A stretch of 64,000 nt of DNA from Podarcis filfolensis (Eukaryota), in the NCBI GenBank assembly GCA_964270895.1, contig OZ185443.1. The stretch is one strand, 5' to 3'. Of this stretch, positions 3,920-60,029 are shown piece after piece. The notes below the pieces were generated by a model. It did no database searches. It was not told where the DNA came from and saw only the letters and a list, made by a program, of their open reading frames with translations. The translations under genes and the position numbers were made by a program. Each line of letters starts with the position of its first letter. The stretch's first letter is position 1.

Positions 3920-5087
3920 AAACATGGTGAATATAGGAAGAGCCTGGTGATGAAGCCAATGGCCCATCTGGCCCAGCACCCTGTTCCTGCTGTGGTCAAC
4001 CAGAAGCCAATGAGAAGTGCAAAACCAGGGCCTGAGTGCAACTGCACTTTCTCCACCAGTGGTTCCTAGCAACTGGTTTTCAGAAGCACACTACCTCCAA
4101 CAGTTGAGGTAGAAGCTCGCCGTTGTGTATAATAGGCATTGGTAGCCTTAATTATCCATGAATTTGTCTAATCTTTTAGAGCCATTAAGCTGATGTCCAT
4201 CACTACCTCTTGTAGGAGTGTATTCTATAGTTTTATACATATTGCATGAAGAAGTACTTTCTTTAATCTGCCCTGACTCTTCTAACATTCAGCTTTATTG
4301 GATGTCCCCAGGTTCTAGAGTTATGAGAGATAAAAAACTTCTCTGTCCACTTGCTCCACCATGCATATATATTCTTTCATGACTCATCTTACACTCCTTT
4401 TCTCTAAATTAACCCCCCCCCCAAATGATGCTGCCTTTCCTCACAGGGAAGTTGCTCTATTCCCTTGCTCATTTTTGTTGCTATTTCCCAACACTGCCAA
4501 GATCCTTTCTGAGGTGAAGCAACCAGTATTCCAAGTGCAATCACACCAAAAATTTGTATAATGGCGTCATGATACTGGCATTTTATTTTCAATCCCTTTC
4601 TTCATGATTCTGAGCATGCAATTTGCCTTTTTCACACCTGCCTCACACTAGGTTGACATTTTTATTGAGCTCTTCACTATGACCCAACGTCTCATTCCTG
4701 GTGCAACACCACCAAATTTTCATGAGCATTGAAAATTTAGCTCTCTCTCTCTTTTTTTTTTTTTGTCCCAGTGTGCAGCACTTTAAACTTGCTTACACTC
4801 AGTCAGAAGAATCTTTTTGAAGCTCTTCACAACCCCTTTTGGTTTAATCCACCCTAAGCAAATTTTCTACCTCACTGCTCACCCCTAACTCTAAATCATT
4901 TATGAACAAGTCCCAGTATCCACTCTTGGGTGACACCACTTTCTACAATAATTTTCCAACTGGAAAACTGTCCATTTATTTCTACTCTCTGCTTCCTATT
5001 TCTTAACCAATTACTGAGCTAAAAGATAGCTCAGCAGTTGTGGAATAAGAGGAAAGGCTAACTCAGGAAATCTTTGGTAAGGTACTT

Positions 5088-5152
<65 letters not shown>

Positions 5153-5900
5153 TTTGAAAGTCTAAGCAGATGGTGTGAAGTGGATCACTTCTATCTATAT
5201 GCTGGTTGACAGTATCAAAGAACTCAAATAGGTTACCAAGAAATGACTTCAGCAAGACTTGTTCTTCTATATGTTTGAGAGTTTTATCTTTGTTAATACA
5301 GTACTTTTCAGCAGTTTTCCTGAAAGAGGCATTAATTGGCCTGTAATTTCTGAGGTCCCTTCTAGTTTTCAGGTATAGAGGCTGATCTTAGGAACAAGCT
5401 ACAATTTTTTGTTAGAAGATCAGCAATTTCACATTTGACTTCTTTAAGAACTCCTGGGTAGATACCATCTGGACCCAGCAGTTTGTCTGTTTTGTCTTTT
5501 AAGGCCTATAATTTCCATCTATTGTAACCATTATTTGCCTCAGTCCCTTAGACTCTCTTCCCCTGAAAGTCATCTTCCAGTGTGAAGACAGAGGCATGCA
5601 AGAATCCATTCAACTTCTTGCAATCTACTTACATTTCTTCAGCTAACTTTCGATTCCATATCATCCCAAGATGGAACTGTTTTCCTAGTCAGTCTACTGC
5701 TACTAAAGCAAGTAAAGATTTCTTGTTTCTGTGGTCTTTGTTTTAGCAACGTGCTCCTCAATTTTTAGTTTATATTCCCTTATTGTCTACTTGCATTTCT
5801 TTTGCCAAACTTTGTGTTCCTTTTTGTTCTCCTCATTTGGAAAAGATTTCCATTTTCTAAAGGAAGCCTTCTTGCCACATTGTGTATTTTATCTATTTCA
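3920..5900 (-). mobile_element. Decayed CR1 LINE, 3' part of ORF2 plus 3'UTR
   Basis: Minus-strand NLFEFFDTVNQHIDRSDPLHTICLDFQKA...KVPYQR matches the CR1 RT motif NLLEFFE..V..VD..YLDFQKAFDKVPH. Many stops and frameshifts. Boundaries approximate. Confidence 0.8.
5089..5148 (+). repeat. Compound microsatellite (GT)11(GA)19
   Basis: Read directly from the sequence. Confidence 0.97.
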
Positions 5901-7214: not shown

Positions 7215-7400
7215 TCTGGTTCAGTTTTCATCTGATCATAGCTTCCAGGTACTGGCTTAGAACTACCAATACTGCTTCTGGATCAAGACAGCAACCAAAA
7301 TACTTGGTGTCATCAGCATACTGATACCACATTCCGAATTTCTGAATGATCTCTCCCACCTGCTTCATATCAGTGTTAAAGAACAATAATAGTAGTGATG
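7215..7400 (-). mobile_element. L2 LINE reverse-transcriptase remnant
   Basis: Minus strand reads FNTDMKQVGEIIQKFGMWYQYADDTKY; the YADD motif lies at 7307-7320. Confidence 0.75.
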
Positions 7401-7628
7401 CCGCATAGGATACATCACCTGTCGTGAAAAAGTAGAGACCTTAAATGCAGTCCTTCCAAAGTCCAACTCAGCTATTTAAATTCCATGTACCAACACGGAG
7501 TGAAAGAGGACTATTTCCCCTGCCCTTGCTGTTAGTTTTTACACATGGTGATTCTACAAAGAATTTTGAACCTCTGAACATGGTTCAGAAAGAACCCAAT
7601 GACTGATGGTATCAACTGAGCTCTTTAA

Positions 7629-14185: not shown

Positions 14186-14689
14186 AACGGAGCACAGCGG
14201 GACTTGCGCGCCCCATAGGAGCCTGGGGCCTGCCTTGCGATCTGGTGGCCAAGGCGAGGCGGTGGGTAGTCGACGGCCCTCATCTCCTGGAAGGCAGCCG
14301 CCGTGGGAAGTGCGGCAAGTCCACAGGCCTCCTGCTGCTGCTCCCCCTCCTCGCGGCCCACTTCGTTTTCCCACCAGCTGCGGAGCCGGGCCTCGTGGAG
14401 GCGGCTGGCTTCGCCTCTTCCCACGGGCCCGCTGCCGGCTGCGAGGACCCGGGAGACCAGGGCCGCCCTGCTGGCCCTTCGTCTCGTTCTCTCTCTCCCC
14501 CGGGAGAGGCTTCCCTCCCTCGGCCTCCTGCCGGCGCCCCTTCGGAGCGTGAGAACCCGGCGAGGAAAAAAGAGTCCCCTCAGGAGGAAGGCGGCGGGAA
14601 AGGTCGCGCCGGGGCGGGCAGGGCGCGGGAAGAAGGAGAGGGAGCCGGCGCGCGCGCCCTTCGGGCAGGTGAAGGCGGCGCCCACTTAC

Positions 14690-14763
14690 TTGATGTCCTC
14701 CCAGACCTCGGGGCCGTAATTCCGGATCACCAGAAGCTCCAGAGCGTGATTGACGAATCCGTA
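14690..14763 (-). CDS. GUCY1B1: GUCY1B1 exon 2 (74 nt; H-NOX N-terminus)
   Basis: ggcag|TACGGATTC...GACATCAA|gtaagt; [24 protein letters not shown](K), identical to the human beta-1 N-terminus as recalled. Confidence 0.97.
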
Positions 14764-15348
14764 CTGCCAAAGAGGGGGGAAAGCGGGAAAGCAGCGTTGG
14801 TGGAAAGCTCTCAAATGCGCAAAGGGGGCGAAGCTTATGATGTGCTTGTGCGTGGAAACACGGGGACGAATCCGGGTTGGGTTCGAGAAACGGGGAAGAA
14901 ATGTAGGGATGGCAGCGATTATTCCCTCCCCCGCCTCCCCCCCCCCTTTCACCTGCTCCAGGTGGATGGTGCCTACAGGAGCGCCTAGCTTCAGGCAAAA
15001 CCACAAAGCCAAGGAGGGGGGTTTGGAGATGGGTACCAACCCGGGTACTTCCTCTGCAAGGGAAAGGAGCGGGGTGCCAATATTCCCCCTTCACATCCCC
15101 GTCCCTCTTCCAGGTGGACTGTGCCCAGGAAAGAAAAGCGCGCGGCTGTGAGGGAGCCCCAACTGCGGCCGCATCTCCCCGCTCGCAACCCGCTTCGCAC
15201 GCCGAAGCTATTCCCGTCCCCTGCGCCGCGCTCCTTATAGCGCATCCTTCCCTTCCCATCCCTGTCAGAATAGCCGCTTCCCTCCCCACTCCCCGAATAA
15301 AGGCGACCCGGCAGCCTGTGGCGCATCTGCCTCTCGCCTCGCACTCAC

Positions 15349-15351
15349 CAT
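15349..15351 (-). CDS. GUCY1B1: Soluble guanylate cyclase beta-1, first coding exon (ATG only)
   Basis: ggcgcgATG|gtgagtgc: strong donor directly after an ATG inside a CpG island. Splices in frame to exon 2, as in the known GUCY1B1 structure. Confidence 0.85.
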
Positions 15352-16032
15352 CGCGCCTGCCGGAGCGGTGACGCCACCTCAGCAGCGGCAGCTCCGCGCG
15401 GGGATATAGGCAGGCGAGGAGGAAGACGAGGACGGCGGCGAGCAGCGGCTTCTCGCGCCAGCCTCCCTCGATGCGCCCTCTTGAGTGTCACCCGAACGCA
15501 GCCAATCGCGACGGCGGCCCGGAGGGTGGCTTCCAATCGGAAGCAGAGGAGGGAATTTGGATGCTGCCGGGGTGGGAGGGGGGAAGGGGAGGGGGTGGCG
15601 AATGATGGGGAAGGCAGGGCGATGCGGGCTGGTGGCGACAGTGCTGGGAGAGGCGACACCGGAGGCAGAGACGTGATTGCCTTGACAATGGGGGGACGCA
15701 GGAGACGCTTCAGCTGATGCAAACCAGGCTGCCCTGAAGTCATCCTGAGGGATGTGCGTGTGCGCCCAGGGCCAGATTCCTCTCCCTCTCTCCATCTCTG
15801 TTCTTGGCTGCTTCCCAGGGACTTGCTCACCTGTTTGCTTTACTTTGATTAATACATCGACTCACCTTTCTAGTCGGTGGCTTTTCTGAGACTTGCATGG
15901 TAAATATTTAACAGGCACGATTGCTCTTCACGTTCCCACAGGCTTCAGTATTTTGGCTCATCATTCGTGCGTTGTTATTAAGCCTTTTCTAGAGTCCACT
16001 TTGTATTTCAGAAGAGTGGCAACTATCCTCTC

Positions 16033-16068
16033 TATCTGAAGAAGTGTGCATGCACACGAAAGCTCATA
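16033..16068 (+). ncRNA. Minimal type I hammerhead ribozyme motif (Penelope-associated, dimer type)
   Basis: CUGAAGA (16036-16042), one extra A, palindromic stem II GTGTGCATGCACAC (16044-16057), GAAA (16058-16061), palindromic AGCU stem III, cleavage triplet CUC (16063-16065), stem I TAT/ATA. Activity untested. Confidence 0.6.
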
Positions 16069-16136
16069 CAAATAAGTAACTTAGTCGGTCTCTAAGGTGC
16101 TACTGGAAGGAATTTATTATTATTATTGTTTTGTTT
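16034..16136 (+). mobile_element. Penelope-like element pLTR fragment carrying a hammerhead motif, with a 14-bp TSD
   Basis: CTGAAGAAGTGTGCATGCACACGAAAGCTCATAC...GGTCTCTAAGGTGCTACTGGAAGGAA, flanked by CAACTATCCTCTCT at 16020-16033 and 16137-16150. Confidence 0.8.
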
Positions 16137-18194
16137 CAACTATCCTCTCTGCATTTTCACAGCTTATAACTCCATTTAGGATTTTTGCTGTTGCTATGAT
16201 GAAGATGATTCCAAAATAATTACCCAAAGGTCACCCTGGCTGCGCTGAGAGCTGTCATTCCTCTAAACCCGCTAGTCAACTGTTATTTTCCAGATTTCAT
16301 TAGAACAATTGAGGTGTGGATTCTGGCAAAGTTGTCCAGCGGCAGCCCAAGCCATTTTCCCACCTGATGTGAAGGGCAAGATGGTGCATTCCCCATTCTC
16401 TGCACAGAATCTAAGTAGAAACCAGACTGGTAGTTGATGGTGATGGAACTGAGGCCTCCATCACACCCTTAGGGCAGCAAGCTGGCTTAGAGGCTGCAGG
16501 GTAGACCACATGGCACACATTTCTAGCCACTTTCCACCCCTCAGAATTTTCTTCCTGAGGCAGCTGCCTTGCTCTGCTACATGGACAGGCTGGCCCTGCT
16601 ATTGCCAATACTCCTGTCCTTTCAATAAACTGTGTATCTGTATCTTTCCAATTCCACATCTTCGTCAGGGGTGCTGACCTCGCCTCTCGGATGTGGTACC
16701 CTCATCTCCAAATGAACATTATGAAAGTAGAGTTTATAACCTTTCTGCCCACATCCTTCCTCGGTCTCTGAAGATACTGATTTTAAAAACAAACAAACCC
16801 AAAAACAATTCCAGAAGAAAAGCTGTATTGGAACTAATAATAATAATAATAAACCAGTGGCAGTATTGCAGCTAGATAGTTGGGGCTTAAAGAGCAAAGC
16901 TGGCCAAGATTCTTCCTACGTGAAAAGGAATGATTACAGTGTAATCATTAAATTGGCCATCAAAAAATGGAGGTAATAGCTAGCAATTCTAAAACTAGGC
17001 TTCTATAAATGGGGAAAGGGCCAAAAACTGCCATGGGTATTAAAATACTTTCTTAAACTCCCCCTTATAGGAAGATTTAAAATGAAAATGAAAATTGAGA
17101 CAATGAAAAACAGGATGCTCATTACCCAAGACAGACTCTTAAGGAAAGGAATTAATTACTGTTTTCTTGCAATACATACCCGCAAGAGGCCATCATGATT
17201 ACTGGGAAATGAAGGTTAAATAAACTCTTCTCTTGGCAGGAAATGTACCAATAGGGAAGTGATCCAAACTGGTGCCTTCTGGTGTTCAAATGTAGTGGAT
17301 AAAGGTCAGAATGGTCAAGTGCAGTAGCAGGAATTCAAAGACATGTGAGCGTGTGCTTTGAATATTGGACTTGCATGCAGATTGTAGTGATTAACACTGC
17401 TGACCCACCCAGAGCTATGCAGGCAGAATGAGAAAAGATGGATTGTGAAATATATTAGATTCAGTCAAAGCAATTACTATGTGCTGTTTTGAGAAGCTCA
17501 GCAGACCCATCTACTAACCATCATTATCTGAATCTGCACTATTCAAATTTCTAATTGAGTTTGTTATATCCCGGTGTGCACTTAACCATGCTTTAACTTA
17601 TATACGTATATAGAAATAATAGATTTAACAGTAGAACAATGTGGAGGAATTATTGAATTAGATCAGCAGGGAGGGGGTTTAAAGACAATGTTTCTGGACA
17701 TTTGCTGGATAAAGCAAATTTTAGAAATGGTTAAGTTATATGGTGATCATAATTCTTAAATCATCTCTGCAGAATCAGTGTGACTTACCTGGAGGAAATG
17801 TGTTTGACAATTAAAGAATAATCCAGATCCACTCAGAAATAAGACCCACTGATGCAACTAGGACTTAACTTCTAAGGGTGTGAGCATGGGATTTCAACCT
17901 AATCCTATGTGCACGTACTTAGAAGTAAGCTGTATGTAATTCATCAGTACTTATTTCAGAGTCACCATGCAAAGGACTGGGCTATAAGACAAGTATATTT
18001 CATTGCAAACAGCTTCCTATAAACAGGTAGTACAATTATAATCAGATTCATTGCAATACATGTTTTTAGCCCCTCACCCTTTCCCATTGTTGCACACCTT
18101 GGCAGTTAGGAGCTCCTTTTTCCAACTTCAGTTGGTAAGACAATTGTAGGCATTCCTGGACCAGGATAACTTAACCACAGTTTTCCATGCATTG

Positions 18195-20098: not shown

Positions 20099-20260
20099 GG
20101 GGAAGGGCCATAACTCAGTGGTAGAGTATTGGCTTTGCAAGCAGAAGGAGCCAGGTTCAATCCCTGGTGTCTCCAGGCAGAATTGGTAATGTCCCCTCTC
20201 TGAAATCCTGGATAGCCACTGTGGACAGTATAGACAATACTGAGATGTATGAACCAAGAG
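20099..20260 (+). mobile_element. tRNA-headed SINE with a CR1-like tail, decayed
   Basis: A box TAACTCAGTGG (20111), B box GGTTCAATCCC (20155), body ending TAGACAATACTGAG. Related copy at about 49719-49905. Confidence 0.7.
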
Positions 20261-29854: not shown

Positions 29855-29991
29855 ATTGTAGAGTTGTAGAGTTGGAACCATGAGAACCATCTGCTCCAAC
29901 TGCCTGCAATGCAGGAATCTTTTGCCCAACGTGTCACTCGAACCCACGATCCTGAGATTAAGAGTCTCATACTCTCCCAATTGAGCTATCC
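29855..29991 (-). mobile_element. tRNA-Lys(CTT)-derived SINE with a CR1 tail
   Basis: Reverse complement GGATAGCTCAATTGGGAGAGTATGAGACTCTTAATCTCAGGATCGTGGGTTCGAGTGACACGTTGGGC, then a CR1 tail. T-arm and acceptor stem are broken. Confidence 0.82.
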
Positions 29992-40225: not shown

Positions 40226-40239
40226 TATTATTGTTATTA

Positions 40240-40283
<44 letters not shown>
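40226..40283 (+). repeat. (TAT)n microsatellite
   Basis: Read directly; about 19 units with two TGT variants. Confidence 0.95.
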
Positions 40284-41291
40284 GACCAGCAATCCTCTAT
40301 CAACACTATGTCATCATTCCTTCTACAGTGCTCAGTAGATGAGATGACAGACACCACCCCCTTTGTGCTCAGTGCAAGTCACACTTATCTGCACATCAAT
40401 TTTTCAATATTGTACCAATTTATATGTAGGTTGCTCCAACTGTTTTCCATTATTAGGTGGTTTCCAGTAGTTCTTTTCCATGCACCTTTTCCAGCTCTAC
40501 AATATCTTTTGTTTTTTGAGATGTGGTCTAAAACATAACTTGGTGGTTGGCTGTGATAACGGGATTGCAATCCTGGGTTTTTCATTGGTTACCACAGCTG
40601 CTTCCCCATGGCTTCCCCGTGGCTTCCTATTTTGTCATCAAAACATTAGGAAGCCAAGTGCAGCAGGCCAGTTGCAAAGATCCTTCATCTTACCTCTTCC
40701 TTACAGGATATGTTTGGTTGGGAAAGACCTATGTGATTGCGCCCACTCACATGGTTCCGAACTTTCACATGTTAGTATGCCAGAATGGCAATGAGTTCCA
40801 GAAAGCATCTCTCTCATCAATGCTGCAACAAATTCACTGCTATAATAAATTAAGGTGCCCTGACATGGAATAAATCTGAGTAAACCTGCTCCAACTAGAT
40901 GTTGCCATGGTTCATCTGGCACAAAGTATTATCCACCCTTACTTCACATAGGTTGCTAACCTCTTTAAATTTTGCTAAGTAACTGCTAAATCAATGTGTG
41001 AGTAAACATTTCGTATTTGAGTTGCTTTTAATCATCCTTCTTTTCCTTTCCCTAAACACAGAAGATGTAGTGAAATAAGATTAAATAAATGCAAAAGGTT
41101 TCAAACTACAGGATTAGGCATAATTAGAACTGAAAACAGAACCCAACGTCAAGAACAGAGTTTGAAAAGGAGCATTCATCAAGTGAAAATTGTCTTGCTT
41201 TTAAAATTATTGCTTAAAAGGCATTCCTCTAAAACCTCCCTTAGAATGGTCTTGTAGACTACTTTCATCAAAGCATCATAATAATTTATAC

Positions 41292-56790: not shown

Positions 56791-57849
56791 CCTAAATTCC
56801 AACTACTCAATAATACAGTTAGATAATTAATAAAAACCATACTAATTTATTTGTTTTTTTACTCATATGCCAGTTGCATGTTTTCATACTGGATTAGAAA
56901 AGGGGCAAATTGGCTAAGAAACTAAGAAACTTTCAAGATTTTAAACAGTTCTTAATTTTAGCTTCACAACCATGAACACAAATGGCAGAAACAACAGCAG
57001 ATTCAACAATGGAGCCTTTGACAAACATTAAAATACTGTCCCCAAGTGCTCAATCAAAAACCAGAAAAGTAATATATTTCTAACCTGTAGCGATTAATTC
57101 TACTTTAACTCTGCTTTCAATAGACATTACCATACAATGCATACGATAGCATCACACCAATAAGTCCAGTTGGTTTTAATGCACCAATTAGTCCAGTTGG
57201 TTTTAAAATAAGAACTTATTTTCTAAACTTGCTGGAAGTTATGTAGATGAGACCGAGGCAAAGAATTCATAAGGACAAGAAAGGAGAGTTAAAACTAGCA
57301 GCCTTTTGCCATATAGCCTACATCATGCTCAACATTGCAAGAGTTGGGATGGGGGGGAGGATGTTTCTTTATAGAATATGAAGCAAGTATCAATAATTTA
57401 ATGTCTGAAATCAGTCTGACTTGCACTCTAAGATGCACCCTGTGTAACTATATATTTTAGTGCTATCTCCAAGAAAGGTGGTAATGGTGAAGCAACTGGG
57501 TATTGGAGTTTTGTTTTGTTTATTTTGCATACTCAGATACAATGGCCAAATAACCAGAAAAAAACAGCCTTGGCCTGGTTTGTGCTTGGTTCACAAAAAT
57601 CTACAGATGAAATTTTCCACAGACCAGAGATAGCGTTGGTGCCAAAGCATGAAAACGAGCTAGTACATTTCCTTCTTTCTTCTCTAATGGGAATAAACGC
57701 CTTATTTTGGGTTGTGTCATTTCTGATGAATTTTTCCTGATCGTTTTGACACTATACCATGGTTTCATCTGCTGTTTTCCTCCTTGCTTCTGTTGACTAC
57801 TGATTCTAGTTTTAGTTTCCTTATTTTAATTGATAACAAGATAGAGACA

Positions 57850-57982
57850 AAATTTTAAAAAATCCTTCCAGTAGCACTTTAGAGACCAACTAAGTTTGTT
57901 ATTGGTATGAGCTTTCGTGTGCATGAACACTTTTTTTTTATTTTGTTTCGACTATGGCAGACCAACACAGCTACATACCTGT
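57850..57982. mobile_element. Penelope-like pLTR insertion with an internal inversion and a 12-bp TSD
   Basis: 57850-57930 is the reverse complement of the segment seen at 16044-16115; 57931-57982 is the next pLTR segment in forward orientation. AAGATAGAGACA at 57838-57849 and 57983-57994. Confidence 0.8.
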
Positions 57983-58499
57983 AAGATAGAGACAGTGTGA
58001 CATAAGTGCTAATGCTAAAGTTGGGGACATTCAGATCCAGCCACGGAGCACATGAAATGATTGATCCATTCTGCTCTCCTCCACACATTTTTGTTTTTTT
58101 TGTTTTTAAAAAACATTTTATTTACAATTCTATCAATAGTGTGTCTTGCCTTCAAGGAGTTAAAACTTGTATATATGGTTCTACCCTTCCCTAGCTTATC
58201 TTCACAATAACCCTGTGAGGTAGGCTGTGCCAAAAGACGTGATGGCCCAGTGAGTTTCATGGCTGAGTGGGGATTTTGGCCTTGATCTCAAAATGACAAC
58301 TGTGAAGCTAAAAGGGGGCGAAGAAAATCGGACGCCATCCTGACCTTGGAAGAAAGGGAAGTTGTGATTTGGTTTGGTTTGGTTTTTAAATGCAACAGAT
58401 CCTTGCAAACTGCTTTGAGAACCGTTACAGTTGTAAAGCGCCGAGCAAATCTTGTTACGAAACAATAACGAACAAATAACATTTAAAGAAGCAGCCATC

Positions 58500-59900
58500 C
58501 AGCCTATGCAAGTATTTGCACAGCATGCGAGCTGCTTTTTCGGGGCGCAGCTACGGTGGCCGCTGAGGAAAACTCTGGACAACTCTTGACTCGGCCCGAG
58601 GAAAGGCCGGCGCGGCCTCGGCAGCAACCTTCCCGCCAGCTCCTGACAGGGTGAGGGTGGAAGCAGCCCGCTCCGCCTTTTCCCACGAAGCTGCCCCGCT
58701 GCCACTGCCTGGAAGCCCGGAGCTCGTCCTGACCCCGCTGCCCTGACCCGGGACGCTTCGCCCTCTGCCGTGTTCCGGAGGCCGGAGCGTGGGAACCAGC
58801 CAGAGCGAGAGCCGGACGGGCGCGCCGAGGGGGGAAGGCGGGGCCCGCAGGCTCCCGCGGCGGCTCCGGTTCCCTTCAGACCGCGCGAGCCTCTTGCCGG
58901 GCGCAGGACCTGCCTCGGCACCAGCAGGGCGGGAAAGGAGAGAGCTGCCCGTCGCGGCCCGTCTTTCCTCTGTGGAAAGGGTAGGGAGGTCCGGAGAGGA
59001 GTCCTGGCTGAGGAACCCGCTTTGCTATTGGCAGGACTTTGCGGAGCTTCCAAACCACCAACCGCGTGCGGAGGGTGGGGGGCAGTGAAGGAATGGTGCG
59101 CATAGGAAGGTGAGGGAAACGGCAACAATACCCCTCGCTCCCCCCCCATCACCTGCCTCAAGTGGACCATGCCCAGAGAAAGGCATTCGCGAACCAATTT
59201 AGGGCAGAAGAAGAAGGAAAGCGGTGGCGCGCGGTGAAGGTTGGGCTAGACCGAGGGAGCGGCGCAGGCACCGCTTGAGCAGGCGAAGAAGGGCGGGAGA
59301 GGGCCACACCCCGGCGCGCCAGGCAGCGCCAGCCCCTCCCCTCCGCGCCCTAGCGCTGTCCAGGGTCCCCATTTGCCCCGGCTGGCGGCTACGAGACGTC
59401 TTTCTCCTCGACGCCTGAGCGAGAGGTGGCCGCGCGCCGCCGACCCGAGCAGCCCCACCGCCGCGCGCTCGCCCCGTTGCCGCCTGCTTTGTGGCGCACG
59501 CTTCCTCCACTCACCCCGTCGCGCTGCTTCTCCCCTTTCGCTTCGCCCGGCGCTCGAGCGGCAGTCGGCGGCTCTTGCTGCTGCTTCTTCGGCGGCGGCG
59601 GTGCCTGAGGGGAAAGCGCCGCTCGCCTTCCCAGCTCGACAGCCTCTCCCCGGCGAACTCATGTTGGAAACGTGCGTTTGGACAGCTGGCTTCAGCCGCT
59701 TCTTCTGGCCCCTCCCCGGCCTCTCGCTCCAAGCGAGGAGGCGCTTTCTTGGGCGCCCAATCGGAAGAGCCGCCGCGGCAGGAGCGGAGCGGGGGGGGGG
59801 GGGCAGAAGAAGCGACACAAAAGGAGGAAAGATAGCAAGGTGCGGGGGGGAGAGAAGAAAGAGCGAGGCACTCGTTAGGTGGCACATTTTAAGACTTCCC
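58500..59900 (-). promoter_or_regulatory. CpG island, probable promoter and non-coding first exon(s) of GUCY1A1
   Basis: GC- and CpG-rich segment 17 kb 5' of the first coding exon. Strong donor CGGG|gtgagt at 59515, a second donor CAG|gtgatg at 59153, and CCAAT at 59757. Boundaries approximate. Confidence 0.8.
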
Positions 59901-60029
59901 ATCATCTTGGGTTCTACTGTGTTCAGTCGCCGATTACCGTAAATACAAACACGGATAGGTTCTTGGCTGCCACATAAAGCCTTGCCCCTTATTCTAAAAT
60001 TGTTGGGAGTTAAACACCTTCACTATTAT

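Follow-up and report, generated by a model that had tools for sequence, protein, structure and literature searches.

Upstream of the GUCY1B1 gene, the stretch of Podarcis filfolensis DNA analysed here (64,000 nt in length, referred to as the window) carries a sequence that holds the parts of a self-cleaving hammerhead ribozyme, on the divergent strand relative to the promoter of this gene. Does the motif cut RNA originating from a host promoter, or was it brought along by a transposable element and does it lie idle at its present position? Based on the motif architecture, the boundaries of the sequence carrying it, the comparison with described elements and predicted RNA folding, it very probably represents a passenger ribozyme motif with little or no activity at this locus, carried by a Penelope-type insert that is young, solitary and truncated at its 5' end.

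Reading of the region 15700-16500 revealed a complete minimal type I hammerhead motif at 16033-16068 on the plus strand. Its letters are exactly those given in an earlier, sequence-only reading, which had described a complete CUGANGA and GAAA core, a palindromic stem II, a loopless AGCU and a stem I of 3 bp. On the plus strand, the motif comprises UAU at 16033-16035, pairing with AUA at 16066-16068 to form stem I (three A/U pairs, no G/C pair), the CUGAAGA box at 16036-16042, an unpaired extra A at 16043 between A9 and G10.1, and helix II, in which GUGUG (16044-16048) pairs with CACAC (16053-16057) over 5 bp around the loop CAUG. Helix II and its loop together represent a perfect 14-nt palindrome, GUGUGCAUGCACAC, at 16044-16057. 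These elements are followed by GAAA at 16058-16061, by the palindromic AGCU of helix III without a loop at 16061-16064 (A15.1-G15.2-C16.2-U16.1) and by C17 at 16065. Since C17 obeys the NUH rule, the cut is predicted to fall between 16065 and 16066. In hammerhead numbering, every invariant core position is present within 16033-16068 (C3 U4 G5 A6 N7 G8 A9, G12 A13 A14, A15.1-U16.1 and H17), and the G10.1-C11.1 pair corresponds to G16044-C16057.

A structure-aware descriptor for minimal hammerheads, requiring the two boxes as well as helix II with G10.1-C11.1, palindromic 15.2/16.2, U16.1, H17 and stem I, matched only once on both strands of the window, namely at 16033-16068. A far looser descriptor, which tolerated a core with U3-A8, bulge lengths of 0-2 nt, helix II and stem I of 3 bp and 2 bp, respectively, as well as a helix III in the form of a hairpin, again returned 16033-16068 alone in the same window. 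Chance likeness to a hammerhead could be suspected on the grounds that the bare pattern CTGANGA...GAAA is common by itself and not significant in the window (11 occurrences observed versus 6.4 expected). However, the strict descriptor found no match in any of 300 dinucleotide shuffles, and the motif resides inside a duplication-bounded repeat whose helix II, GAAA and AGCU are common to its relatives. The shuffles and the repeat-family membership effectively rule out a chance resemblance, the probability of which is considered to be next to nil.

No Rfam hammerhead family reached its gathering score, and none matched at E<=10 on 15950-16200 (251 nt), the families considered being type I (RF00163), type III (RF00008), HH9, HH10 and type II. 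These families have the same catalytic core as the motif, which differs from them in having neither a hairpin helix III nor a full helix I. Weak Rfam matches to RsaOG, a snoRNA and a CRISPR repeat were rejected as noise.

The repeat carrying the motif is delimited by a 14-nt target-site duplication, CAACTATCCTCTCT, present at 16020-16033 and 16137-16150; the two copies were 100% identical in the repeat search. They enclose an insert of 103 nt (16034-16136, plus strand), interpreted as a 5'-truncated Penelope-type or Penelope-derived non-autonomous retroelement and composed of 2 nt, the hammerhead, a body of 71 nt and a T-rich end. The insert terminates 71 nt past the predicted hammerhead cut site. 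T16033, the final base of the left duplication, is at the same time the outer base of stem I, in agreement with the former claim that the outer pair of this stem is contributed by the flank. Given a core without any loss and two identical duplication copies, the insertion is probably young, and mutation has probably not inactivated it. Tandem copies were not found, the target-site duplication being the sole direct repeat in 15900-16300. Moreover, an ATG is located in the helix II loop of the insert, the reading frame of which stops after 9 codons, and coding potential is therefore absent. A linked reverse transcriptase ORF was not seen with the insert, and the window contains two short copies of the family.

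The second family copy is 133 nt in size and located at 57850-57982 on the minus strand, where it features a 12-nt duplication of its own, TGTCTCTATCTT, at 57983-57994 and 57838-57849. Between helix II and the T-rich end, the two copies share 90-91% identity across 70-77 nt. Helix II of the second copy contains one mismatch, and its CUGANGA box is missing because the truncation falls inside the hammerhead. In addition, this copy possesses an inverted T-rich 3' end and an extension of approximately 35 nt ahead of the truncated body, which makes it an insertion of the 'Penelope palindrome' type with a 12-nt duplication. The family is thus represented in the window by two dispersed copies with duplications of 14 nt versus 12 nt and an inverted tail in the copy at 57850-57982; for Penelope-like elements, published descriptions include truncated copies, duplications that vary and tails that are optional or inverted (PMC11167929). 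The sequence-only reading is thus upheld with respect to the origin in an inserted retroelement with a target-site duplication and to the Penelope-type minimal architecture with a dimer-type helix III.

Degenerate family patterns fitting both the 16-kb and the 57.9-kb copy were used for searches in other sequence collections. The two matches obtained in metagenome contigs were rejected as chance, as they are located in GC-rich contigs with no insert sequence around them, and a 23-nt family pattern had 0 matches in prokaryote genomes and viral contigs. A 13-letter family string, exact in the 16-kb copy and one letter off in the 57.9-kb copy, was absent from the literature text searched, and an 11-letter string of the 16-kb copy had no match in the supplement of one paper. 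Within the window, an (ATT)n microsatellite at 40228-40284 gave short spurious BLAST matches to the T-rich end of the insert.

Minimal hammerheads (min-HHRs) of metazoan Penelope-like elements were described by Cervera & de la Pena 2014 with four features beyond the search descriptor (PMC4209133). An unpaired nucleotide between A9 and G10.1 is conserved in these ribozymes, and further class features include the G10.1-C11.1 pair as well as a long helix II (6-8 bp) combined with a short helix I (typically 4-5 bp) (PMC4209133). Positions 15.2-16.2 are palindromic and loop 3 is missing or a tiny palindrome, and helix III consequently requires the pairing of two copies (PMC4209133). Such motifs were reported in turtle and snakes, mostly single and dispersed, and are thought to derive from truncated elements (PMC4209133). 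The motif at 16033-16068 agrees with this class in its type I topology, intact core, bulged nucleotide, G10.1-C11.1 pair, extended helix II and loopless palindromic tetranucleotide, that is, a dimer-type helix III; furthermore, the 16-kb insert resembles the class in being a single motif in a truncated, dispersed copy. The sequence-only reading had noted the extra A and likened it to that of a viroid hammerhead. The extra A itself stands, and its interpretation is refined here: as the feature is conserved in the Penelope-element class, it is a family hallmark of these hammerheads and not just a viroid oddity (PMC4209133).

Some deviations from the published class were observed. With 5 bp and the loop CAUG, helix II falls slightly short of the published 6-8 bp. 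In this copy, which is truncated 2 nt before the core, helix I comprises three A/U pairs, the outer one derived from the duplication, versus 4-5 bp in published examples. Short helices I are known elsewhere, with 2 bp in D. virilis and 3 bp in Poseidon_Ac. Moreover, hammerheads of the Penelope-like class reside in terminal repeats, the elements themselves coding for a reverse transcriptase and a GIY-YIG endonuclease, whereas the family of the insert is represented in the window by two short copies. It counts against the Penelope tie that no full-length family element with a reverse transcriptase was present in the comparison, and the assignment is a putative one.

Another closely related system is the Poseidon_Ac element of Anolis carolinensis, whose consensus across the tandem junction reads CUGAGGA, a bulged U, a helix II of approximately 6 bp, GAAA, CGUC and AGG, with a palindromic ACGU and a 3-bp stem I of two G/C pairs and one A/U pair (PMC11167929). 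The motif described here follows the same plan of box, one bulged nucleotide, helix II of 5-6 bp, GAAA, 4-nt palindrome, C17 and 3-bp stem I. The bulged nucleotide is U in Poseidon_Ac and A16043 in the insert, and stem I contains two G/C pairs in the former as opposed to three A/U pairs, one of them from the flank, in the latter. Reverse transcription of Poseidon_Ac starts at ORF positions 111-118; as its cut site lies at position 29, this amounts to a separation of 82-89 nt (PMC11167929), compared to a distance of 71 nt between cut site and insertion 3' end in the present case; genomic copies of Poseidon_Ac additionally have an optional tail of 30-40 bp. Sequence similarity between Poseidon_Ac and the insert is confined to the core. 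Furthermore, the Poseidon_Ac ORF begins in helix II, whereas the corresponding frame of the insert ends after nine codons, and Poseidon_Ac copies are tandem, nearly identical and active, in contrast to the lone 103-nt fragment found here. From the missing similarity outside the core and the early stop, the insert is, as judged from its sequence, assigned to a different family.

For the Penelope-type insert, the following course of events is proposed. An element endonuclease would make a staggered cut, giving rise to the 14-nt duplication. Reverse transcription would begin at an element-internal start, located 3' of the hammerhead cut site at a distance of 71 nt, and would halt 2 nt outside the hammerhead core, on its 5' side. 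Even fragments of 100 nt would keep the hammerhead, given its position very near the 3' end of the element. In its native setting, that is, in tandem element transcripts, the motif would pair with a second copy via the palindromic helix III and would process the element RNA. As a separate observation, CAACTAT at the start of the duplication (16137-16143) resembles CGACTAT (57950-57956), which follows the T-rich end, inverted in the second copy. This likeness may reflect target-template microhomology at the start of reverse transcription, or coincidence; in the Anolis Poseidon_Ac study, no such target-template homology was found (PMC11167929).

Concerning the origin of the insert, a variant of this explanation deserves consideration, namely that the insert represents the monomer of a short non-autonomous hammerhead repeat (non-LTR retrozyme or SINE-like) mobilised by Penelope-element enzymes. 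Non-LTR retrozymes share with the insert that they are short and non-coding, feature type I hammerheads needing dimers and occur as scattered monomers, and they are related to Penelope-element terminal repeats (PMC7229834; bioRxiv 10.64898/2026.07.22.740005). In reptiles, the retrozyme consensus averages 176 bp, with many dispersed monomers, and the retrozymes are derived from Penelope-element terminal repeats (bioRxiv 10.64898/2026.07.22.740005). The small size of both window copies (<140 nt) and the non-coding nature of the insert, compared with the Poseidon_Ac ORF starting at helix II, are in line with this variant. However, non-LTR retrozymes are defined by tandem repeats giving circular RNAs, whereas a tandem arrangement is absent at the 16-kb insert, which is single, with the other family copy 42 kb off and on the opposite strand. 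Moreover, the family is judged from two copies, and in other Penelope-like families the hammerhead resides within a terminal repeat that is non-coding. The retrozyme variant is regarded as a serious but tentative possibility; the reading followed here is a truncated copy of a Penelope-type retroelement or of a short non-autonomous derivative.

Regarding the gene context of the motif, exons of GUCY1B1 and GUCY1A1 were compared one by one to the reference. The end of GUCY1B1 exon 1 is located on the minus strand, with the start codon at 15351-15349 followed by the donor GTGAGT. The translation of exon 2 (14689-14763, minus strand) matches soluble guanylate cyclase beta-1 at residues 2-26 (E 1.8e-12). 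The distance of the motif from the ATG, formerly estimated as approximately 690 bp, was measured as 682 nt. A CpG island extends over approximately 14200-15800 (GC 62-72%, CpG observed/expected 0.54-1.09), and the GC content drops to 36-44% around the insert. The motif is located approximately 230 nt outside the upstream edge of the island. Further upstream, minus-strand ORF pieces at 28.4, 32.8-33.6 and 34.1-34.9 kb encode HNOBA and guanylate cyclase domains, as would be expected with GUCY1A1 located upstream in the orientation of GUCY1B1. The gene context as previously described, comprising GUCY1B1 exons 1-2, the CpG island and GUCY1A1 upstream, all on the minus strand as far as the genes are concerned, was hence reproduced. 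The plus strand lacks a canonical poly(A) signal from the island up to the motif, its first AATAAA occurring at 16624; therefore, upstream-antisense RNA, if made, could reach the motif.

Several further features of the locus were recorded. A tRNA-Ala (anticodon TGC) at 20104-20175 on the plus strand, between GUCY1A1 and GUCY1B1, was called by Rfam (46 bits) and ARAGORN and may represent either a genuine tRNA gene or the leading part of a SINE that derives from a tRNA. A partial tRNA-like match at 29931-29988 on the minus strand was at the Rfam threshold (29 bits, model positions 8-63); since ARAGORN made no call, it is taken as probably a SINE remnant inside GUCY1A1. At 58200-60000, long GC-rich ORFs are densely packed on both strands of a second GC-rich stretch, which probably corresponds to the GUCY1A1 promoter with its CpG island; a candidate CCAATCGGAAG motif may be common to the GUCY1B1 promoter and this putative GUCY1A1 promoter. 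Within the GUCY1B1 gene body, ORF fragments with reverse-transcriptase-like motifs (NYRPI..., YADD) are located at 5061-5387 and 7231-7440 on the minus strand. Their motifs suggest LINE remnants; they are unrelated to the hammerhead insert.

Folding predictions for the motif in its context point to an inactive conformation. For the 151-nt transcript 16000-16150, the MFE and centroid fold has -29.9 kcal/mol compared to -4.0 for the hammerhead fold, both values being thermodynamic predictions that ignore co-transcriptional folding and proteins. In the predicted fold, CUGAA of the box pairs with UUCAG of the upstream flank, and AUACAAA just 3' of the cut site pairs with UUUGUAU at 16000-16006; the flank competing with the hammerhead fold spans 16000-16017 on the plus strand in the MFE and centroid structure. 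The three stem I pairs have a predicted probability of 0.0, and the helix II pairs reach predicted probabilities of 0.94-0.95. As a whole, the region 16000-16150 is not unusually structured (z = -0.69). When two copies were folded in trans, the predicted dimer MFE structure was formed via the 14-nt helix II palindrome and not via AGCU. Judged from its geometry, a dimer swapped through helix II would be unable to build helix III.

The sequence-only reading had proposed that promoter-antisense RNA could self-cleave at the motif. According to this explanation, upstream-antisense RNA from the GUCY1B1 CpG island would be cut at 16033-16068, alone or in trans, which would shape its length or stability. 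The intact core, the location on the divergent strand close to ATG and island edge, and the plus strand free of canonical poly(A) signals ahead of the motif are consistent with this possibility, as is the in vitro activity of a squamate Penelope-element hammerhead of like plan (PMC11167929). However, single motifs of this class showed no detectable cleavage, and dimers and trimers had low activity only, that of dimers at non-physiological Mg2+ (PMC4209133). Dimer cleavage has also been reported by Lunse, Weinberg & Breaker 2016, as related in a review (PMC6765202). RNA-seq read ends were missing from the cut site of the Anolis element as well, although that element is active (PMC11167929). At the present locus, neither of the two descriptors found a second hammerhead on the plus strand in 64 kb, the 4-bp AGCU contact is too weak to hold a trans partner, and the core is predicted to be sequestered. 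Furthermore, promoter-antisense RNAs are unstable anyway, which also counts against a role of cleavage. With the CUGA box hidden in the predicted fold and single motifs showing no detectable cleavage in published work (PMC4209133), the claim of self-cleavage was not borne out and is regarded as highly improbable. Exceedingly improbable, and slightly more so, is cleavage of upstream-antisense RNA in vivo in trans, via transcripts of other copies or with the help of proteins. By comparison, the caveat in the same reading that the ribozyme may be weak or inactive is its better-supported half.

A different question is whether the motif is a catalytically competent relic, which, like other Penelope-element hammerheads, would cleave in vitro when two copies are supplied, as a tandem dimer or through a high RNA concentration, at high Mg2+, and nevertheless be inert at the locus. 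All conserved core positions, G10.1-C11.1 and the palindromic helix III are intact, and the Poseidon_Ac ribozyme with its 3-bp stem I is active in vitro, its activity being abolished by C3G or G8C (PMC11167929). Because this active Anolis ribozyme also has a stem I of 3 bp, a short stem I alone is no proof of inactivity. However, stem I of the present motif consists of three A/U pairs, one of them borrowed, as compared to two G/C pairs and one A/U pair in Poseidon_Ac; the 14-nt palindrome would favour the inter-strand helix II dimer, which by its geometry should not form helix III; and reported rates for the class are low (PMC4209133). Competence of this kind is considered rather unlikely, albeit far from negligible. 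Concerning the passenger motif at its genomic position, negligible self-cleavage is expected, because one copy is present with no same-strand partner, stem I has three A/U pairs, and the flank is predicted to sequester the core. A host function is not indicated.

As found, the insert adds a further dispersed copy to a ribozyme class previously known from reptiles and other animals; as such, it matters little. It provides, however, a clean textbook case for the abundance of lone hammerhead motifs: since the ribozyme is located within approximately 100 nt of the Penelope-type 3' end, nearly all truncated insertions retain it. Only if plus-strand RNA were shown to be cut at 16065/16066 would the locus bear on the use of dispersed transposon ribozymes by host promoters. 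If cleavage in trans were true, a transposon would have donated a ribozyme at which promoter-antisense RNA is terminated or processed.
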